NCBI GenBank assembly: GCA_951804945.1
Contig: OX638151.1
Span: forward strand, 63,984,001-64,048,000
DNA length: 64,000 nt
Direction: 5' to 3'
From: Podarcis cretensis
Taxonomy: Eukaryota
Shown: positions 1 to 44,043 of the stretch, in pieces
How positions within the stretch are numbered: the stretch's first letter is position 1
Layout: each line of letters begins with the position of its first letter
The notes under the pieces: generated by a model
The model's database searches: none
The model's input: the letters and a program-made list of their open reading frames with translations, nothing else
What the model was told of the DNA's origin: nothing
Program-made: the position numbers and the translations under genes

Positions 1-393
1 AACACCTAGATGGCCTACTTTGCCTTTCAAAATACCTTATAGCCCTCCTTTCAGCTGTCTGTGCAAACTCACGTGAAAACTAAACCTGTATTACTTATTT
101 TTACTAGCCCCTCTTCTGCCAACCTCTCATATGAGTAAAAAGCCAGCTAGCACTCGCCCACCTCTATAAAATAATAAAATGGGAGACTAGTAACTGCAAA
201 AGTTGTGCCACATTATCTGGGCTCCAAGTAAATATCCACAGAACTTGCATTAGAAGGGGCTAGACCCAATTCACACATGCTAGGGAACCAGTAAGACTGC
301 CTTGGGCACAACTCAGCTACGTTTGGGAGAAATTGTTTTGCTTCTCCAGGTTTCTACATTTTTTTAAAAAAGAGAGTATGGAATGGATCTTAC

Positions 394-516
394 AGTTTTG
401 ATGATTTATGTTCAAGTAATAGAGAGCAGCAGACTTTTGCAAGCCGGGGTTCTCTGAAAACGCCAAGGTCCTCAGAGCCTCTAGGGAGACCTTGCCAAGT
501 GGTGACATTTCAAAAC
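394..516 (-). CDS. Vac8-like armadillo-repeat protein, second coding exon (GFEMSPLGKVSLEALRTLAFSENPGLQKSAALYYLNINHQN); gene continues beyond window start
   Basis: Acceptor ctttcttaag|, donor |gtaaga, 123 nt, phase 1 to 1, in frame with the upstream exon. LEALRTLAFSENPGLQKSAAL matches recalled Vac8 ARM1 [21 protein letters not shown]. Confidence 0.8.
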
Positions 517-1361
517 CTTAAGAAAGATGTGATAATAACAGAGTCTGAATTGTGTCAGAAGAAGTTAAATACCTGAAGAGTCCAAATGCACAGAATTTAA
601 AGCAACAGATAAAACACGACAGAGACAAACTTCCATGTAGAAATATTCTCTCCTTTAAAATTAGCATACTAGATAGAGCTGAATTTTTGCAGTCCAAACC
701 TCATGTGAGAAAAAAGTTGTTATATATGCCAGTTTGTGAGAGTAGTTGGGACATTCCAAACTTGGATTTCTGTTACTGTATTTAGCAAACCAGCTTAGCC
801 ATGCTATTTCCTTGATTATCAAGGATGAAAACAAAAGATGGGAGCACTTAAGAGTTGGAAGAAGTGGACAGCATTCCATTTGATGTCTTTCTGTTTTCAA
901 ATAATAAATTCAACTCCAATCCTCTAATACCTAATAGGTTTTTACAGAGAGTATTTCAATGTTGGCTTAGGAAAGTGCTCGTGCTTGTAGCAAAAGTACG
1001 ATATGTGTTTGTTAGTCTTTTAAGATGCCACAATATTTCTTGTTGCTTTTATGCAAGAGGCTAACAGGTCTACCCCTTGCTATGATGCCTTTTGTAGAAC
1101 TGGGATTTCAAATGCTGAATGAGAGTAATTTAATCAATCGGCCTGGAACTGGGATCCACTGCTTTGTCTGAATATTTGGTGCTGGTGAAATACTGGTTCC
1201 CCCATTCTCCCTTCATTGCTTATAAGAGCAGAAGCATAAACAGCTCTGTGTCATTCACTTTATACGATCACTGAACTGCATGATCTTAAACAAAGCAACC
1301 GAGCTCAAGTAAACATCTCTCCAACTTTGGCTGCCCCACCTTCATAACAGAAACTTCTCAC

Positions 1362-1587
1362 CTCTTTCAATGTGCTGCAGAAACTCCTGAGCAATCTCCT
1401 CTTCCTGGGTCCGAAGGGCAGGCTTGTATAGCTGCTTTGTTTTAAAGTTTTTCCGTTTCAGACAGGGGCACTCATGGATCTGACCCAAGCACTCCTGAAT
1501 ATCCTGCACCAGACCCGAAGACAGTGTTTTTACTGAGAGAGCCAAGTCACAAAGCAACTGGACACACTTTGTACACAGCTGACCCAT
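1362..1587 (-). CDS. Vac8-like armadillo-repeat protein, first coding exon (MGQLCTKC...QEFLQHIER-G)
   Basis: ATG in strong Kozak context (atcATGG). Exon is 226 nt and ends at a GAG|GTGAGA donor in phase 1. Its C-terminal part LYKPALRTQEEEIAQEFLQHIE resembles recalled fungal Vac8 YEPVLAxxEREAVxxLLxYLE. Confidence 0.8.
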
Positions 1588-2269
1588 GATTAACTTTCGG
1601 ATCCAACAGAAAATCAGAAATGCAGACTGAGAGTTTGTACTGCCACTGTTGCTTCTGTGTTCCCTTGTACTGGCAGATTGCGATCTAGATAACTCAAAAA
1701 ATAATTATCTAGACAAGTTGGAAGGGAAAGCTACTGCTGCTTTCTGTGTTCAAGCAGCATGGCTGAGCAAAATCTAACCACTGTTCTCTCTTGCGAAGCA
1801 TAAGAAATACTTTTAAAACTTTAGGCTGCAGCCAGTGGTGATCACCTTTCCTCTATCTTAGGAAGGAGAAAAATTAGGCGGTCAAACAAAAACAGTACAT
1901 TCAGAATCCACCTCTGTTCTGTAGCAGAGAAATCATGTTTTGTAAGCCAAGAATAAGGTCAACTGTTTTGGAAGGCTAGCAGCACCAGCCTCTGGGATAA
2001 CAAACAAAAGAATGCTTGCATATTGTGGAGTGACATCATGGGTGAGGGTAGCACACCTGCTGGGCTCCACCTCTACAACTGAACTGCCAATCAGAAAAGA
2101 CAAAAAATAATAATAAACTAACAAGAAATTCCAGTTTCTACCAGACAGAAACAATAGTACTGTCTGGTTGGCCAGCCAGCCATAATAGCTTTGAATACTT
2201 CACGTAGGCAAACGCAGAAGAATACACAAATGCAACCACAATCATTAATATTTAGTTTGCTGTCCCTCC

Positions 2270-10620: not shown

Positions 10621-11195
10621 GTACATTTCTTCCATTTATTAACATTCTCAGTGGTTTAATTTTTTTAAAACATTTGAAAGACAGACTTTATTATTAGCAG
10701 AAATTTAAAATGCATGCTAAGAATCACATAATAGCTTAAGTGCTGTTTTAAGAAGATTCAACTGATTTTAGAAGACATTTTTTGCTTTGGCTACTGAAGC
10801 TTGTAGACTACCGTTGGGTGTGGAGTAGTTGCAGAGGATGTACAGGACTTAATGCTTATAGCAGATGAAATATCAAGAAAGAAATGCTTATAAACAAGAG
10901 AAACAAAGGGAATTAGTTGCTCTGATTCTTTACCCTGACTCTCCCCAGCCCCCTCCAGCTCATTTAAACAGAAAGAATAGCTATCTGCACATTTCTTTGA
11001 GGGAGGGCTTCTATATTTTATTCCATTGACACAGCACTTTGACCCTCAAAAGGCTGCTGTTCAGAGTGCCTCCTGACCTTAATGGAGCTACTTGGGGCAG
11101 GGGTGTCTCTGGGCCATGCCACTGTACATAATATGGGTAACTCTTATTTTAGAAGAGTCATAAACTATGGGCACTAACATTTCTATTTATCTTAG

Positions 11196-12101
11196 TTCTA
11201 GGTCTCGGTCTAGGACGTACTCACGATCTCGCAGTAGAGATCGTGTTTATAATAGAGATTACCGCAGAGATTACAGAAATAATAGAGGAATGAGACGCCC
11301 CTATGGCTATAGAGGAAGAGGTAGAGGATATTACCCAGGAGGTGGAGGTAGATACCACCGTGGAGGTTACAGACCTGTTTGGAATAGAAGACACTCTCGA
11401 AGCCCTAGACGAGGTCGCTCACGTTCTAGAAGTCCAAAGAGAAGGTCAGTCTCTTCCCAGAGATCTCGGAGCAGATCTCGCCGATCCTACAGATCTTCCA
11501 GGTCTCCAAGATCCTCTTCATCTCGGTCTTCATCTCCATATAGCAAGTCTCCCGTATCTTCTAAAAGACGTGGGTCATCAGAAAAGCAAGCAAAGAAAAC
11601 GGAGGGAGCTGCTTTACAAGACAGTCCATTAAAAAATAAATCACAAGAGGAGGAAAAGGGCGCATTTGAACATGATCCTTCTGAGGCACTAGATGATTTC
11701 AGTAAATCTGCAGCAGCTTCAGGTGATATTTGGCCTGGCCTTTCAGCATATGATAACAGTCCGAGGTCTCCCCATAGTCCTTCTATTGCTTCCCCACCTA
11801 GTCAGAGTTCCTCATGCTCTGATGCCCACTTACTCAGCACAGTCCACTCAGCAAAAAACACACCTCAGCACTCGCATTCCATTCAGCATAGCCCTGAGAG
11901 GTCTGGGTCTGGCTCCCTTGGAAATGGCTCTAGTCGCTATAGCCCTTCCCAGAATAGCCCGCTGCATCACATTCCTTCAAGGAGAAGTCCTGCTAAAGCA
12001 GTTGCATCACAGAATGCTCCACGTGAGGAATCTCGGATACGTTCTTTTTATCCTGAAGCTGGGGATCAAGAAAGTACAAAGGGTGCAAAATTTCTGAAAA
12101 G
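11196..12101 (+). CDS. BCLAF1: BCLAF1 exon 4 (RS domain)
   Basis: ORF 11167-12105 contains [27 protein letters not shown] and [15 protein letters not shown]; 906 nt, phase 2 to 2. Confidence 0.97.
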
Positions 12102-13365
12102 GTAGGAACCATAACTACAAAAATAAAGATAACATAAATAGTACAGTAAGCATACTTCTTTATACATGTATATTGTGCAATGAAAAGTACCTGAATTTTC
12201 TCTAATTTTATGCTGGTTATACTAAGGTTCTGACTTAGGAATGTATACATGAACTTTTCATTGTTTCTCAGTCAGAGCTGTAAATATACGTTTTCATTAG
12301 TATGTTACAGTGTCTTCATTGGAAGCAATTAAAGAAGAAATATACTGCCGATTAATGTGTATTAACAGAGTCCTGTTATGAGAGTGATTTTCCCATATTT
12401 TTTACAGCTTTAATAAGAGTTGCTCTATCAGTGTTAGGCAGTAGTGCTGAAAGATCCTTTTGTCTTGGTAAAGGAAATACCATTGTGGTGGCCCAGATTT
12501 TTCAAAAGTGCAAGATTGTATCTATCTATTCTACAGTAGAGAAATTGTTAAATTTAAACTGGACATTGGCAACTTTCTAGCTGACAAGGTTCTCACCTTT
12601 GTTTATAATGTATCTGTAGAACTGAACATAGCTGTAACCATTTATGCAATGTTGTGTCTTTTAAAAATGAAATAATCAACCAGTTGGAAATCTGTTTCTC
12701 TGAGCTCTGCAGGATAGATAGTACAATTCTGTTCACTTCTCAATTTACTGAATATATCTTCTGAAATATATTATTTTTTATAAAGGAAAAATTGTTCTAT
12801 TAGCTTAGTAATATATAATAAATGGCATACAAATATCGTAGAAGATTACAAATGAAATAGACTAGGGGGCTAGATGTACTTTTAATATATAGGATAGAGA
12901 CTAAAAACCACATTGTATTGCTTCCGTAACTGCTTTGGCAAATGCCTTGCAATTTATTGTATCCAGATTGTAAGTGTGTTCTACTATGTAAGCAGTGTAA
13001 GAAGACATTTTTATAAGCTTTTTTTGACAGTGTTATATGCTCTGAACTTCTGGAATTAAATGGGATACAGATACTGTATTTGTGCTGAAATGTATTTAAG
13101 AAAAATATTGTTTTGTAAAAGAGAGCAGTTTTCTTACAAAATAAAATAGGCACAGAAGTACAGGAACTTGTGCAAGAAATAGCTAAAAAATCTGAAGAGC
13201 CACTGAAGAATCTCATCAGTCAATATATAAAAAACATTATAATTGTATAATTAAATTTGTTTGCTTTGGTACTCATTTTGTGGAGTTGGGATGCCATAAG
13301 GATAAATGCTACAAACTGAAATGAAAGCAGTTGGGAGTTATTCTTCTCTTCTTTGCCATCCACAG

Positions 13366-14034
13366 GTACACAGATGAAGAGTCTAGAGTATACCTGCTTG
13401 AGAGGAGTAATGCTAGGGAGAAAGATGCTCAGAAGGAGAGAGGGCTAGAAAAAGGGAGGACAGAGGGAGAGAGAGAGTGGGAGGACCAAGAAGCTTTGGA
13501 ATATTATATGGATAAAGAATCTGGAAAACAAAAATTTAATGACTCTGAAGGGGAGGACACAGAGGAGACTGAAGATTATAGACAGTTCAGAAAGTCTGTT
13601 TTGGCAGATCAGGGTAAGGGCTTTGCTGCATCTCACCGGAATGCTGAGGAGGAAGGCTCAAAGTATAAATCTAAAATCTCTCTGAAGGCAAACAGAGACA
13701 GTGAAGGATTTAGAGAAGATAAAAGTTACAAGCTTAAAGACACAACTAGCTATGTAGTGGAGAGGCCTAGTGCACTAAAAGATAAGCACAAGGAAGATGA
13801 GAAAGTATCTGAGAGAATGATGAAGAAAGAAACCCAGTCACCTGAGCAGGTAAAGTCTGAGAAGCTCAAAGAACTCTTTGATTATAGTCCTCCCCTGCAC
13901 AAGAATTTGGATGCAAGAGAGAAATCTACTTTCAGGGAGGAGAGCCCACTTAGGATCAAAATGATAGCCAGTGATTCTCATCGACCTGAAGTTAAACTTA
14001 AAATGGCACCTGTACCACTTGATGATTCAAACAG
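13366..14034 (+). CDS. BCLAF1: BCLAF1 exon 5 (including alternatively spliced 5a portion 13366-13887)
   Basis: YTDEESRV...LFDYSPPLHKNLD...MAPVPLDDSNR; acceptor cacag|, donor |gtaatt; 669 nt. Confidence 0.97.
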
Positions 14035-14126
14035 GTAATTATCTGAATTTGTAACCGTTTTCACTTATCCATGAAGGAATTGCTTTTCATAAATTTTTGT
14101 TCTTCTTTTTGTGTTATGCACTTTAG

Positions 14127-22529: not shown

Positions 22530-22803
22530 NNNNNNNNNNNNNNNNNNNNNNNNNNNNNNNNNNNNNNNNNNNNNNNNNNNNNNNNNNNNNNNNNNNNNNN
22601 NNNNNNNNNNNNNNNNNNNNNNNNNNNNNNNNNNNNNNNNNNNNNNNNNNNNNNNNNNNNNNNNNNNNNNNNNNNNNNNNNNNNNNNNNNNNNNNNNNNN
22701 NNNNNNNNNNNNNNNNNNNNNNNNNNNNNNNNNNNNNNNNNNNNNNNNNNNNNNNNNNNNNNNNNNNNNNNNNNNNNNNNNNNNNNNNNNNNNNNNNNNN
22801 NNN
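22530..22803. other. Assembly gap (274 N) in BCLAF1 intron 9
   Basis: Run of N. The flanking exons join in frame, so no constitutive coding exon needs to be hidden in it. Confidence 1.
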
Positions 22804-23503
22804 TTTACTGACATGTAGGCTTAATGTGGGAAAGGGGGGTGAGAGTTATTTCCCCCCCTCAAGACAGATAGTGGGCTCAGAGGAACAGGTTAGTCTTTAA
22901 TAAAGCAACTTACTCAGTGTGAACTTGTAGCAGTGATAAGAATTACTTCAGGTATATCTACCTTTGGGGATTTGTATTATATTCTATAAAAACTGTAAAA
23001 TCAATGCCAAATGTATTTGCTTTGGGGAAATTGAATGTGAAGATCATATTTTCCTGCTCTTACTTACATAATAATGGATTTACTTGCACTTTCTGTTTAC
23101 TTTCTTACACTGATGTCCATACAACCATCAGTTGCTGATTATTTCTGCACCCTGGGTTTATATAGCAAAAAGGCAATATCAATTTTTGCTTCTTGGTAAG
23201 ATGTACAAAATAAATGAAATAGTATCACTTTAGAATTTTAACTTTGGGGATTTTCCCCTACCTTTTATTCTCTCTTCCATTGTAAAGCATGCATATATAT
23301 TTAAATTAGTTTGCTGGCTAATAAGTTCTCCTTGTTAGGTGCTATGAGCCATTAGCTGTTAAAGAGTTATAGATGGAAACTGGATAGTGTAATAATACTG
23401 CACGTTAGATTCAAACAAGAAAAGAGGATAGCTTCTATGGGCACGGAACATAAATCCTATGTATAGGATGCTACAGCAAACAGTATGGTTTCTTATTTTT
23501 CAG

Positions 23504-33825: not shown

Positions 33826-34156
33826 AGGTAAAGGGACCCCTGACCATTAGGTCCAGTTGTGACTGACTCTGGGGTTGCGGCACTCGTCTCGCTGTATTGA
33901 CAGAGGGAGCTTCCGGGATACAGCTTCCAGGTCATGTGGCCAGCATGACAAAGCCGCTTCTGCAGAACCAGAGCAGCGCACTTCCCGCCAGAGCGATACC
34001 TATTTATCTACTTGCACTTTGACGAGCTTTCAAACTGCTAGGTTGGCAGCAGGGACCAAGCAATGGGAGCTCACCCCATTGCGGGGATTCAAACCAACGA
34101 CCTTCTGATCGGCAAGCCCTAGGCTCTGGTTTAACCCACAGCACCACCCGCGTCCC
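33826..34156 (-). mobile_element. Sauria SINE with tRNA-derived head (near full length)
   Basis: Minus strand begins GGGACGCGGGTGGTGCTGTGGGTTAAACC; B-box GGTTTGAATCC; ACCTTT tail; 12-bp imperfect TSD aaatcagattta/aaatcaaattta. Confidence 0.92.
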
Positions 34157-34779
34157 AAAATCAAATTTAGGAAGGTGAAATCTAGTAATACTGTTCATTA
34201 GCATGTGCAGAATTGCACTCCTGTTTTAGATATTTGCATAGCCATCAGGAAACCATTGATTTGTAGTATACACTATTCCCTAGGGTTTAGCAGTTTTGAG
34301 ACTTCATCTGCAGAGTGGTGGTTATCAAGGCAGGTCCTAAACATTCTGCTTCCTGAGCAAAGGACGGCTTCCCCCATTCCATGTAGAGAAGCGGAACCTG
34401 AATCTTCAGCCCTGGTAATGGCATATCATCCTCCAATGCACCCGTGTGGCGCTTTGAGATCCCTGTTCGCTTAGGGCGGTGCACAAAAAAAGATTCGTGG
34501 CACACAACCTCGTTCTCCAATAAGCTAGTGGACCTCTGGAGGAATGGCTGAGGGGCTGCCATGGCAGCTTTTTTTTGGAAATTGGCTCACCTAAGCCGCC
34601 CTGAGTCGCTGTCAGAGGGAAAGGCGGGCTATAAATAAATATAATAATGGTAGGGATGGCAACGGTTGTTAAGTTTTCATTAGCTTCAATGGGTACTTGA
34701 TGAGATATTAGGTGATTATAGCTTTTGTCTTGTGTGCTGTCTCCCATAAAAGCAGCTAGAAGTGCAACTAAAACCACAA

Positions 34780-35830
34780 CCCCTCGCTGACGTATGTTTA
34801 ACATATATGAGACACTGCCTCTGTGCACACTGCGGACGCAACAGCACCTCAGCGACTCTGCCGCCGACCGACTAGAGCTCGCTGCCGCTTCCCATCAGCC
34901 CCCGCGGTCATAAAGCGTCTCTCCTACGGTTGGGCTCCGCGCCGCGCCGCGGCAAACCACACCCTTTCCAGAAACGTCGCCTTAGCGCTGCGGGATTGGC
35001 TGCAGAGCGAAGCCACGCCTCTTCCCGCTCGTCCAATCAAGAGAGGGAGTGCCAAGGTTTGATTGCGCTGAGTCCTTGTCTCGCGCTCAGCGTCTTTCCG
35101 CTCCACTCTCGCTTCGGCGTCCGCGCGCGCGTGTCTGTGAGAGAGAAGTCTCGCGGTGGCGGGTGAGTTTCCCCTCCGGCAGCTGCTTCGGTCTCCGCGC
35201 GGCGCGCTCGTGCTGCGGGGCGGGCTTCGTTCTGCGCCCTGTTTTAGCTGACGGTTTGGCAAAGTCGTATGAAAGCAGCCCCTCAACGGCTGAAGGAGGA
35301 CCGTTGGGGCGGGGTTGGCTCTCTCCACGCGAGTTGTGGGTAGCTCCCTTCCCGGCCGATAGGAAGCGGGCCTGTCGAGAGAGAAACGAGGGGATGCAAA
35401 AAAAAAAAAAAAGGCCACCAACAGCCCCCTCACCGAATGGTAAAACTCCCCTTCCTGATCCCTCAGCAGCTGCAATTAACGAGCGAGGAAAAGGGATTCC
35501 TCTGCTTGAGACCTCTCGCCCGCTCTCCCTTCTTCCTGTCACATTGTTGAGGTCTTTGCAAAAGCTGCAAAGTTTGTCCTGATAACAGTTTCTCATTCAG
35601 CTAATACTTTTTTTTGTTTTCAATATTTTTATATAACGGTTTAATCATGTTTCCAGGTCTGTTTACAAAAAGTCGTTTCCTTCCGCATCTAAACGCACGA
35701 CCGTCCCTTTCCCTTTCTTCCGTAGAAACGTGACCCTCCGAATGGTGCAGCAATAAAACTGCTCGCACATTTGCAAAGCTGAACCGGGTCCAGGTTGGTT
35801 TCGAATTGGATCGGGGAGCGCGGGTTGAGG
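34780..35830. promoter_or_regulatory. CpG-island promoter of MTFR2
   Basis: CpG-rich; CCAAT boxes 34995-34999 (reverse) and 35033-35037; E2F-like TTCCCGC 35022-35028. Confidence 0.85.
35070..35162 (+). other. MTFR2: MTFR2 exon 1 (5' UTR; start approximate)
   Basis: Donor CGG|GTGAGT at 35162/35163, just downstream of the CCAAT boxes. Confidence 0.65.
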
Positions 35831-35834
35831 TTGC

Positions 35835-35893
35835 TGCGTTGCAGAGGGTTGGACTAGACGACCCTGGGAGTCCCTTCCAACTCTACAATTCTC
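35835..35893 (+). mobile_element. CR1-type 3' tail fragment (SINE or LINE)
   Basis: GGGTTGGACTAGACGACC...TCCCTTCCAACTCTACAATTCT, the same tail as the SINE at 2767. Confidence 0.65.
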
Positions 35894-36372
35894 AGTTTGA
35901 GGTGTTGGTGAAATGGTGGTTGTGTTAAACATCAGCTGCCTCTTGAGTTAAGGGGCGGGGGGGGGTGTTTTTTGAGAAATTGTGGTTCATTCTCTTGGGT
36001 GTAAAAGTGTGGCAATGTTTTTTTAGTTGTGTGTGAGAGGTGTGTCCCTTTTGAATATTAATACTGCTCCTGCAAACACATGCTATGGATCGAGCTTGAG
36101 TTTGGGGAAAGTACTCTACAATTCAATGATTCAATTATTATTTCTAATAATTTATAATACTCCTTCCTTATTACTCTTTTAACTAATTGTGCTTTTACAT
36201 TGCATTTATAAATATTTCATGTGGATGTATAAGTAAACTGAGTTTGTAGTTTTACCCTAATTATGAAATAAACTCTTCTCTTTGCAGCTGTAGCAAATAT
36301 TTGCTGAGCCCCTCTGGCATGTGCAACAGTAATTTTTAACTGGCACTTGAGTTAATTCAAGTGCTTTGTACT

Positions 36373-38609: not shown

Positions 38610-39655
38610 GTATTTATATCCCGCCCTTCCCAGCCAGAACCGGGCTCAGGGTGGCTAACATCAAAATATATAATACATTAAGACATAAAATTCAGCAATC
38701 GACTGAAATACAGCTTAAAATCGGATTTAAATCAAAATAAAATCAGATGGCTACCCGCAAATTATAACTATGACTATAGGGGTTGGGAACTTTAAGTACT
38801 CACCATGCTCAGCTATTTGTATGAGCGGGTGAGAAGAGTTAGAGAGGCCACTTATATGCAGGGTCTTGTAAAAGGAGAGGGGTCAGACTGAGCCCCAACC
38901 AAAGGCCTGGCGGAACAGCTCCATCTTGCAGGCCCTGCGGAAAGATGTCAAGTCCCGTAGGGCCTAGTCTCTTGCGACAGAGCATTCCACCAGACGGGGG
39001 CCAGGGCCAAAAAGGCCCTGGCTCTGGTCGAGGCCAGTCTAACCACCTTGAGGCCCAGGACATCCAAGATGTTATTATTTGCAGACCGTAAGGTACTCTG
39101 TGGGGCATACCAGGAGAGGCGGTCCCATAGGTACGAGGGTCCTAGGTCGTATAGGGCCTTAAAGGTTAGAACCAGCACCTTAAACCTGACTCTGTACTCC
39201 ACCGGGAGCCAGTGCAGCTGATATAGCACTCGTTGGATGTGGTCGCACGGCGAAGACCCCGTACGTAGTCTCGCCGTGGCATTCTGCACCCGCTGGAGTT
39301 TCTGAGTCAGCTTCATGGGCAGCCCCGGAGGAGCAAATTACAGTAATCAAGCCTGGAGGTAATCAAGCATGGATCACAGTGTCTAGATCAGGGCAAGAAA
39401 GATAAGGAACCAGCTGCTTAACATGGCGGAGATGGAAAAATGCTGCCTTTGCTGTATCTGTAACCTGCGCCTCCATAGAGATGGAGGCGTCAAGGGTTAC
39501 ACCCAGACTCTTGACAGAAGGTCTGGCACTAATTGCGCCCCCGCAAGGGATGGGAGTTTAACCCCCAACCCCATGTCATCTCGACCCAACCAGAAGACCT
39601 CTGTCTTTAAAGAATTTAGCTTCAACAGGCTCCCACGCAACCATCCAGCCATGGC
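38610..39655 (-). mobile_element. L2 LINE 3' portion with ORF2 remnants
   Basis: ORF 38948-39316: KLQRVQNATARL...LYQLHWLPVEYRVRFKVLVLTFKALYDLGPSYL; L2 3' stem-loop and tail at about 38610-38660. Confidence 0.92.
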
Positions 39656-42225: not shown

Positions 42226-43336
42226 GTAAGCCTGTCTTTGTGATTCCTGATACATGTGTCCATGCATGGCTCCTGCTCTTCATAATGTCCAGTCACACTG
42301 ACATCTCATAGCAACATTTATATAGAAAACTGTCTTCATATTTCATTATCCAGCACACAGTGTTCATATGTTTAAAAGTTAGATATGTAGTGTAGGCAAG
42401 AGAAAACGAAATAACATATATTAGAAATAGAAGTCTAGTCAACACACTAGATAGGAGAGTTATTGGGAATTTTGCCTGAATCCAAAGAACTCGCAATTAT
42501 TTCTATATATTCCTAGGAGGGAACAGCATTCTTCCCCGCCCGCCCCCCGCCCCCCCGCAATGCTGCCTGGTAAACTTCTTTTCAGATTGAGGGAAAGATC
42601 AAAAGCAATTGTGAAATAGTATAGAGGTCTACTGTTCAAACAAAAAAGGGGGAGTCATGGTTGTTGTGTGTTATAAAATATTCATTAATTATGTAAATGA
42701 AAGTTGGGGCTCTGTGCATTGCCCATATTTTACCATTGTACCATACCAGCCGAAAATGTTACTATATTCTTCAGGATTCAGCCTTTTAGAAATGAGGATT
42801 ATAAACACTTTAACAAATAAATTTGTAAACATTTTCTTTTAGCCCATATAACTATAGTAATGTGCTTGAAAAGGTGTAATTGTGATGTCTGAAATCTTAA
42901 ACTAAAGAAGGACTGTGAGTGACTTTAGTGGTGGGAGGTTGTCCAGTATAGTTTATTTATCCAATTCTTTCTCCATGGAATTCATGGCACTATTTATAAT
43001 ATTACATTTTACCCTTGCAATATTTCTGAGGAAACCTAGGTTAAGAGAGAGTCACTCAGTGTTCATGGCTGAACAGTGATCTGAATCCAGGTCTTCCTTG
43101 TCCAAGTCTGAAATCTGCCAGTACCACTGTAGCATAATGATTTGTCTGTTGAATAATCTTTTTAAAAGAACCTTTCAAGGTAGTATGATTTTGTTCCTTG
43201 GAGTCTTCTGTTGTTTCATGGAAGACAACACTTGCTAGACTTTGCAGGTAGTGTTAAAAGTGCATCAAAGGACCTTCATGCCATTGTCATATCAACATTA
43301 AAGTTCCCTAATATCACCTCTTGAATTGTTTAATAG

Positions 43337-43643
43337 GTTCAGGCATTGTGAATTCTTCAAACATGGCCTTTAATGCTCTCCCACAGCCAGGAGTGACTTC
43401 GACACCAGTCCCAAGTTCTCACATTGCTGTTCCTCCACCGCCACCAGCACCACCATGTCCAGCTGTACCGCTATCTAATTTTGATTCCCGTAATTCAGCC
43501 ATTGAGCTTATTAAACAACGTCGGGCTTCAAGTAAGATAAGAAATACTACAGATAGTACAGGTTGGCAGAAGGAAGAAGCTCTTCCCACTATGATGGATG
43601 TTCTGAAGGATATAAATAAGATCAAACTAAGAGCAGTTGAGAG
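43337..43643 (+). CDS. MTFR2: MTFR2 coding exon 5 (alternative in-frame acceptor at 43343)
   Basis: Poly-proline tract and PTMMDVLKDINKIKLRAVER; phase 1 to 2. Confidence 0.92.
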
Positions 43644-44043
43644 GTATGTTGAGCAGAACATGCGTTTGAAGATAAAATAATGAATATAAAATATGGTCAA
43701 CATCTTCCCTCTGAGAAGTTATTTAAGAGTGCCTGAAACTGGTGTTATATGCACAGGTGCCTAGCTGCTGTCAGCGCCCACTCCTGCTTGAATGCACTTG
43801 GACTGATGAGTGAATGCATAAATTGTGCAGAGAACTCACACTGAACTAGCAGAATTATTTCCCCTGAAAATCTAAGTTGGTGCTCATAACCTTCCTTCCT
43901 TTCCCTGTTCTGCTGAGTGGGTGACAGAGGACATGGCATTGAAACCTCTCCTGATAGTTCATTATAGCTGCTACAAATCATTTTTGCCATATAATGTATT
44001 TATTTTTATTTAACAAACTGTGTATACAACTTAACTCTAAATA

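Follow-up and report, generated by a model that had tools for sequence, protein, structure and literature searches.

Is the Vac8 family, whose yeast member is the vacuole hub for autophagosome initiation, nucleus-vacuole contacts, and vacuole inheritance, also represented in vertebrates? The question is raised by one end of a 64,000-nucleotide stretch of the lizard Podarcis cretensis (GenBank assembly GCA_951804945.1, contig OX638151.1, positions 63,984,001 to 64,048,000; hereafter "the window"). In an earlier reading of the letters alone (the original prediction), two minus-strand exons at 394-1587 were proposed to begin a Vac8-like gene with an acylated N terminus. The two coding exons are confirmed. 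We conclude, with a probability of about 0.8, that they are the first two exons of a single-copy gene that encodes a Vac8-family protein of ~576 amino acids and that has been vertically inherited since the jawed-vertebrate ancestor at least. The exons were translated, searched, and scored singly, and all full-length analyses were performed on database orthologues.

The exons have GT/AG borders, and the peptides quoted for them in the original prediction are exact. Translation is predicted to begin at the ATG at 1587-1585 (minus strand), the earliest in-frame start past an upstream stop, with A at -3 and G at +4. Exon 1 encodes a Cys-bracketed N-terminal helix, a basic linker, and the H1 helix. 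The acceptor of intron 1 consists of a pyrimidine-rich tract ending in TTAAG, after which exon 2 encodes the linker following H1 and the first ARM repeat. The features, in the order in which the gene is read, are as follows (a slash marks an exon border; X1, X5, and X11 are labels of individual sequencing runs).

1588..2137, minus strand: 5′ untranslated region (UTR), minimum extent, contiguous with exon 1; a contig of run X5 is unbroken over 1360-2137
1362..1587, minus strand: coding exon 1, 226 nt (75 codons plus 1 base, phase 1), with donor G/GTGAGA
1564..1587, minus strand: codons 1 to 8, MGQLCTKC, with Gly2 and Thr6/Lys7 in a myristoylation-type context and invariant Cys5 and Cys8
1450..1470, minus strand: codons 40 to 46, CPCLKRK, with invariant Cys40 and Cys42, then Leu-Lys and a basic stretch
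1366..1410, minus strand: codons 60 to 74, the H1 helix, a helix in the AlphaFold2 model and gapless against Vac8 residues ~22-36
517..1361, minus strand: intron 1, 845 nt, GT..AG, absent from the contigs of three runs
394..516, minus strand: coding exon 2, 123 nt, with donor T/GTAAGA, covered by the contigs of three runs
1..393, minus strand: start of intron 2, with donor GTAAGA at 393-388; later exons fall outside the window, past its left edge

Splicing of the two exons was examined in sequencing runs from relatives. None of the runs found to match was recorded as RNA, but 18 of them contain only 9-17% of the words sampled from 300-1700, approximately the share of this interval taken up by the exons and adjoining UTR. 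Four runs, from three organisms and four studies, were aligned to the window. In three of these (three organisms, three studies), a single Logan contig covers exon 2 and exon 1 and omits the 845 bases between them. The spliced contigs are 865, 2669, and 2876 nt long and are 95-99% identical to the window. The joint as aligned, 514 to 1360, can be shifted by +2 to 516/1362, giving GT..AG on the minus strand; this is the junction that the original prediction had placed between 1362 and 516. A GT..AG skip common to three species is strong evidence for a spliced transcript. The 2669- and 2876-nt contigs extend ~2 kb beyond exon 2 into sequence that the window lacks, a length that agrees with ~1380 nt of coding sequence still to come plus a 3′ UTR. 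Upstream of exon 1, contigs are collinear with the window to 1995 (run X11) and to 2137 (run X5, whose contig ends there). The 5′ UTR is therefore at least 550 nt long, and the transcription start site in these relatives lies at or upstream of 2137.

The contig alignments also suggested that exon 2 might end at 384, with a noncanonical TT donor, and this was rejected as an over-run of the aligner. The Podarcis orthologue reads HQN-LNIQLPREHLEIYY at this point, and the in-frame translation of the contig loose ends is QLPREHLEIY. An exon 3 starting with (L)NIQ codons, T(G/A)-AA(T/C)-AT(C)-CA, would agree with the start of the intron, GTAAGATCCA, in 7 of 10 bases, and each of the long contigs has exactly 3 unlisted mismatches. 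By the Podarcis protein and the loose-end translation, the 10 extra bases are an alignment artifact with 3 mismatches, and the donor at 394/393 stands. The exon 3 pattern taken from the loose ends had no match in the window; exon 3 therefore lies outside it. Two contigs depart from the simple gene structure. A contig of run X1 leaves the window sequence at 1837 (minus strand) with 28 GC-rich letters, for which the window contains no match with 3 or fewer mismatches; the letters could come from an alternative 5′ exon farther upstream, beyond the window, from divergence between the species, or from a chimeric end of the contig. A 167-nt contig of run X11, with a depth of 2.9, lies at 109-274 inside intron 2 and probably represents unspliced pre-mRNA or DNA carry-over and no exon.

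The exon peptides belong to a protein that is widespread among vertebrates. They are identical at 73/75 and 40/40 positions to the N terminus of Podarcis muralis LOC114594173 (576 amino acids) and at 71/75 and 40/40 positions to Zootoca, which places the window in a lacertid lizard. When exon 1 was searched with phmmer against 1.84 billion representatives, 18 matches were obtained (best E value, 1.5e-28), and all those that could be identified are N termini of one vertebrate protein; those with names are proteins of king cobra, timber rattlesnake, birds, coelacanth, bichir, a newt, and a shark. A Pfam scan of the two exon peptides alone returned no family because the peptides are too short. 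The repeats are visible only in full-length orthologues, which are ~570-580 amino acids long and contain Pfam Arm repeats at E values of 1e-18 to 1e-29. A search with the coelacanth protein gave at least 120 full-length relatives (E values, 1e-205 to 1e-168). Cartilaginous fishes, sturgeon, coelacanth, amphibians, tuatara, squamates, turtles, crocodilians, and birds are among the relatives listed, and the lineages with full-length orthologues (~575-580 amino acids) include sharks, chimaera, and bichir. No mammal and no teleost was among the matches listed.

Vertical descent was assessed with a quick maximum-likelihood tree (short search, with Shimodaira-Hasegawa-like approximate likelihood ratio test support) of 38 orthologues, all from vertebrates. 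The gene tree reproduces the species tree: chimaera groups with elasmobranchs, turtles with archosaurs, tuatara with squamates, and lacertids with the amphisbaenian, while coelacanth, sturgeon, and amphibians form groups of their own. The tree is the basis for the vertical inheritance proposed above. The gene is not a new one; it is already named in RefSeq and UniProt in well over 100 vertebrate species, as "vacuolar protein 8," "vacuolar protein 8-like," or "uncharacterized LOC." Annotated examples are Podarcis muralis LOC114594173, chicken LOC421690, Xenopus tropicalis "vacuolar protein 8," and Latimeria XP_006007785.1. These entries are automatic predictions. The lizard gene is another species' copy of the same gene, and nothing substantive differs.

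Assignment of this protein to the Vac8 family is well supported, and we consider it very probable. The tests of collinearity with Vac8 used the coelacanth and Podarcis orthologues, the window itself covering residues 1 to 116. In a phmmer search of the coelacanth protein against PDB sequences, yeast Vac8 scored 202 bits (E value, 1e-58) in one collinear stretch (query 59-530 versus chain 13-481), and the next natural families were beta-catenin (67 bits) and importin-alpha (62 bits). A profile of the 38 orthologues gave 281 bits for Vac8 (E value, 1.6e-82) versus ~82 bits for the next natural family. The AlphaFold2 model of the Podarcis protein (mean predicted local distance difference test score, 87; predicted template modeling score, 0.78) consists of a helix at 6-39 with moderate confidence, a disordered segment at 39-59, a helix at 60-74, a 9-residue linker, and an ARM solenoid at 84-572. 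All of the top five Foldseek matches to this model were Vac8 (7YCJ, 5XJG, 6KBM, and 6KBN), with target template modeling (TM) scores of 0.79-0.84 and 28-30% identity over ~500 columns, while beta-catenin reached a TM score of ~0.55-0.63 and 14-19% identity. By sequence and by fold, yeast Vac8 is by far the best solved relative, as the description of a Vac8-type ARM protein had implied.

The layout of the protein is likewise that of yeast Vac8 (PDB 5XJG, 6KBM, 6KBN, and 7YCJ), with an N-terminal lipid-anchor region (predicted here), H1, a short flexible linker, and ~12 ARM repeats. Unlike yeast Vac8, the vertebrate proteins have ~38 additional N-terminal residues, with a helix between Cys5/Cys8 and Cys40/Cys42; Gly2 is restricted to some vertebrate lineages; and the long Asn/Ser-rich C-terminal tail is lacking. 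Beta-catenin, plakoglobin, and importin-alpha are also ARM solenoids with an Asn-lined peptide-binding groove, but they lack an N-terminal Cys-rich anchor and a Vac8-type H1. Membership in the beta-catenin or importin-alpha families was rejected on bit scores (~62-82 versus 202-281 for Vac8) and, for beta-catenin, on a TM score of ~0.6 versus 0.8 for Vac8. Kinship with Rap1GDS1 (SmgGDS), which appeared as an ESM Atlas neighbor (rank 4; score, 0.96), was rejected because the PDB sequence searches gave no support for it: no SmgGDS chain was named among the best 60 PDB matches in either sequence search. ARMC3 is an ARM repeat protein that papers citing the original work tie to autophagy (ribophagy in spermatids), and PMC8664900 cites Lei et al. 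2021 for the proposal that it is the mammalian Vac8 homologue. In the ESM Atlas feature search, ARMC3 ranked 13th, under chordate and fungal Vac8 clusters. A study of the catenin family recovered vac8p and armc3 as individual monophyletic groups and treated vac8p as a fungal and plant protein (PMC3141441).

The residues by which Vac8 holds its ligands were looked for in the vertebrate protein. In yeast Vac8, H196, N234, N277, R317, and N318 contact the partner backbone, and mutation of N234 or N277 abolishes binding; V28, L31, L32, Y34, and L35 of H1, together with L52, L55, and L63 of ARM1, make up the core between H1 and ARM1 (PMC10161063). These residues were mapped via the phmmer alignment, in which native numbers are obtained by adding 8 to the chain index, consistently at V28, L52, N234, and N277. 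In the coelacanth alignment, H1, the linker, and ARM1, all of which are encoded within the window, are gapless against Vac8, as the original prediction had claimed. Yeast V28, L31, L32, and L35 correspond to A66, F69, L70, and I73, and L52, L55, and L63 correspond to L90, L93, and L101. Both asparagines required for binding are kept (N273 and N317 in coelacanth), and their columns are nearly invariant among the orthologues. The position of yeast H196 is H, Q, or R in vertebrates. On these alignments, the central groove and the H1 switch look functional, and one end of the groove looks altered (see below).

The N terminus is conserved in a pattern of its own. Cys5, Cys8, Cys40, and Cys42 are each present in 38/38 orthologues, and Cys42 is followed by Leu43 (33/38) and Lys44 (34/38) and then by a basic stretch. 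The original prediction had named Gly2 and Cys5, Cys8, and Cys13 as acylated residues. All four are encoded here, and Cys5 and Cys8 proved invariant, but Gly2 is present in only 25/38 orthologues and Cys13, which is lizard specific, in only 7/38, and the Cys40-x-Cys42-Leu-Lys segment had been overlooked. Gly2 is absent from 13/38 orthologues, with MA or MD at the start of the protein in turtles, MD in the caecilian, and ME or MA in all cartilaginous fishes sampled (sharks, rays, and chimaera); the bichir protein begins with MS. Gly2, a small or polar residue 6, and Lys7 make a good N-myristoyltransferase context under the usual rules, and MGQLCTKC is, on its face, a good predicted myristoylation and palmitoylation motif. 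The helix at 6-39 has a hydrophobic moment of 0.3-0.4.

Comparison with yeast suggests how this arrangement may have arisen. Yeast A21 aligns with vertebrate residue 59, which places the yeast Cys cluster at approximately vertebrate 42-45, over Cys40-x-Cys42, in a register that assumes gapless extension through the disordered linker. The register also leans on a Leu-Lys pair that we take to follow Cys7 in yeast. The vertebrate protein would then be a Vac8 that has kept the ancestral Cys cluster internally and has gained a new N-terminal helix of ~38 residues, a second Cys pair, and often a myristoylation site; we offer this as a lead. An insert of about 35-40 amino acids before H1 had been proposed, and ~38 extra residues are indeed there, but they may be better read as an N-terminal extension ahead of the ancestral Cys cluster. 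Yeast Vac8 is acylated at G2, C4, C5, and C7, and palmitoylation, not myristoylation, is essential to vacuole inheritance (PMC2132703). This reliance on palmitoylation fits invariant Cys residues and a dispensable Gly2.

Since only two exons are in view, the gene in this lizard might be decaying or truncated, with only its 5′ end intact-looking. Relative to the four runs, the 348 coding bases show 8 listed differences, of which 5 are synonymous and 3 are nonsynonymous (R59Q, Q31R, and R91S). In run X1, 3 listed differences fall in the coding bases and 13 in ~250 UTR bases (1588-1837), or ~1% versus ~5%. Codon 59 (position 1412) is CGG (Arg) in the window only and CAG (Gln) in all four runs and in Podarcis muralis. 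A residue private to the window species would fit decay, but the comparison marks Arg59 as a lineage-specific or allelic change in the disordered tether. Further, both exons are open; the start, donors, and acceptor are intact; the peptides are 97-100% identical to Podarcis; most coding differences are synonymous, with coding divergence far under UTR divergence; and close relatives have transcripts of full-length size. Decay or truncation of the gene is accordingly very improbable. The original prediction had named findings that would count against it (downstream exons without ARM repeats or with disabling mutations, a best match or tree placement in another ARM family, or lack of a transcript joining 1362 to 516), and none of these was found.

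The surroundings of the gene agree with the position next to BCLAF1 that had been described. On the plus strand, a THRAP3/BCLAF1-family gene (Pfam PF15440; E values, 1e-29 and 4e-30) has two large coding exons, at 11167-12105 and 13331-14038, and a GC-rich, CpG-rich island at ~6.0-7.0 kb, upstream of these exons, is a putative promoter. The Vac8-like gene and BCLAF1 are thus head to head, with ~9.6 kb between their start codons. Farther along, an exon at 43321-43680 (plus strand) encodes the C-terminal part of a member of the mitochondrial fission regulator family (PF05308; E value, 5e-20). This gene is probably MTFR2, which we take to lie in the neighborhood of human BCLAF1, and the GC-rich region at 34000-36000 may be its promoter. 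Two open frames on the minus strand are retrotransposon fragments in intergenic and intronic DNA: a reverse transcriptase remnant of the long interspersed nuclear element (LINE) type with a KFADD motif (2252-2383) and the conserved C-terminal tail of a LINE ORF2 (HWLP...FK.L.L.FKAL; 38948-39316). A run of N at ~22530-22810 is an assembly gap or a masked stretch.

What might the protein do? An acylated anchor joined to an adaptor is a reasonable inference, to which we give slightly better than even odds. The first ~46 residues would be a membrane anchor, which in the lizard would be composed of myristoyl-Gly2, S-acylated Cys5 and Cys8, the moderately amphipathic helix 6-39, and S-acylated Cys40 and Cys42 beside the polybasic stretch. 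The disordered tether 47-59 would keep the ARM solenoid close to an endomembrane, on its cytosolic side, and the inner ARM groove would bind extended peptides of partners, making the protein an organelle-bound adaptor like Vac8. Its partner set would have to differ from that of yeast, because Nvj1 and Vac17 are fungal proteins.

Several observations weigh against the gene model and the function drawn from it. The window holds 116 of ~576 codons, and the rest of this species' gene is taken from Podarcis and from relatives' transcripts; that the runs are RNA is a guess, though a GT..AG skip is hard to obtain from DNA. Orthology to fungal Vac8 was judged by comparison with solved structures only, and the tree covers vertebrate orthologues only. 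At the altered end of the groove, R317 and N318 of yeast are replaced by S/T in coelacanth, R/I in lizards, and W with I or V in birds. Gly2 is missing from about a third of the orthologues, and the four invariant Cys residues could equally bind metal. We know of no animal counterparts of the yeast partners Nvj1 and Vac17, and the function may have drifted.

Such drift is the core of a different view, in which the protein belongs to the Vac8 family by descent and not by function and the vertebrate proteins have taken on a new task, for instance at the plasma membrane, Golgi, cilium, or secretory granules, with no relation to lysosomes or autophagy. The loss of R317 and N318 and the vertebrate-specific 38-residue N-terminal helix are in line with it. 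So are the confinement of Nvj1 to Saccharomycetes, outside of which it has no homologue (PMC6240307), and the sole expression record found, at a low level in a list from chicken pituitary (PMC5148799). On the other hand, the groove asparagines and H1/ARM1 contacts have been conserved for more than 1 billion years, which argues for a retained binding mode, and no datum favors any particular alternative compartment. Repurposing is a serious possibility but a doubtful one. The Cys residues themselves invite another explanation, in which C5-x-x-C8 and C40-x-C42 bind a structural metal or serve in redox chemistry or dimerization and membrane binding, if any, is peripheral. CxxC plus CxC is a common zinc ligand pattern, and the four Cys residues are found in 38/38 orthologues whereas Gly2 varies. 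In the AlphaFold2 model, though, the two pairs are at opposite ends of one 34-residue helix, ~50 Å apart, and therefore do not make a single site within one chain; a single intrachain zinc site was rejected because this geometry gives it no support. A Leu-Lys-Arg/Lys basic patch after Cys is also typical of S-acylated segments, and the acylated Cys4, Cys5, and Cys7 of yeast Vac8 sit at an equivalent distance from H1. A metal or redox role for these residues is improbable. The acylated anchor with an adaptor groove is the reading that we retain.

In its boldest form, this reading would hold that, mammals (and perhaps teleosts) apart, jawed vertebrates have retained a true Vac8 orthologue that is lysosomal or late endosomal, is anchored by a vertebrate-specific, multiply S-acylated helix (plus myristate where Gly2 is present), and recruits autophagy or organelle-tethering factors. 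We put this forward tentatively, well short of even odds. If it is true, mammalian autophagy would lack a Vac8-like coordinator through secondary loss, and the ancestral animal system could be studied in chicken or Xenopus as models. In terms of annotation, the locus is ordinary, the gene having been predicted and named in RefSeq already; the work is a rediscovery of an annotated gene in which the N-terminal detail is partly new, and the vertebrate branch of the family is functionally unexplored. The searchable literature yielded no functional paper on the vertebrate gene and one mention of it, where chicken LOC421690 is listed in a table of a pituitary transcriptome (PMC5148799), and no paper was found that treats ARO together with Vac8. 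Autophagy papers describe the existence of a Vac8-like coordinator in mammals or animals as unsettled and cite ARMC3 as a candidate (PMC8664900). The gene described here, present in the genomes of sharks, frogs, reptiles, and birds, provides a relative of Vac8 that is much closer than ARMC3; it is conserved and expressed, with its ligand-binding asparagines intact. The question of an animal coordinator is therefore directly testable in chicken or Xenopus.

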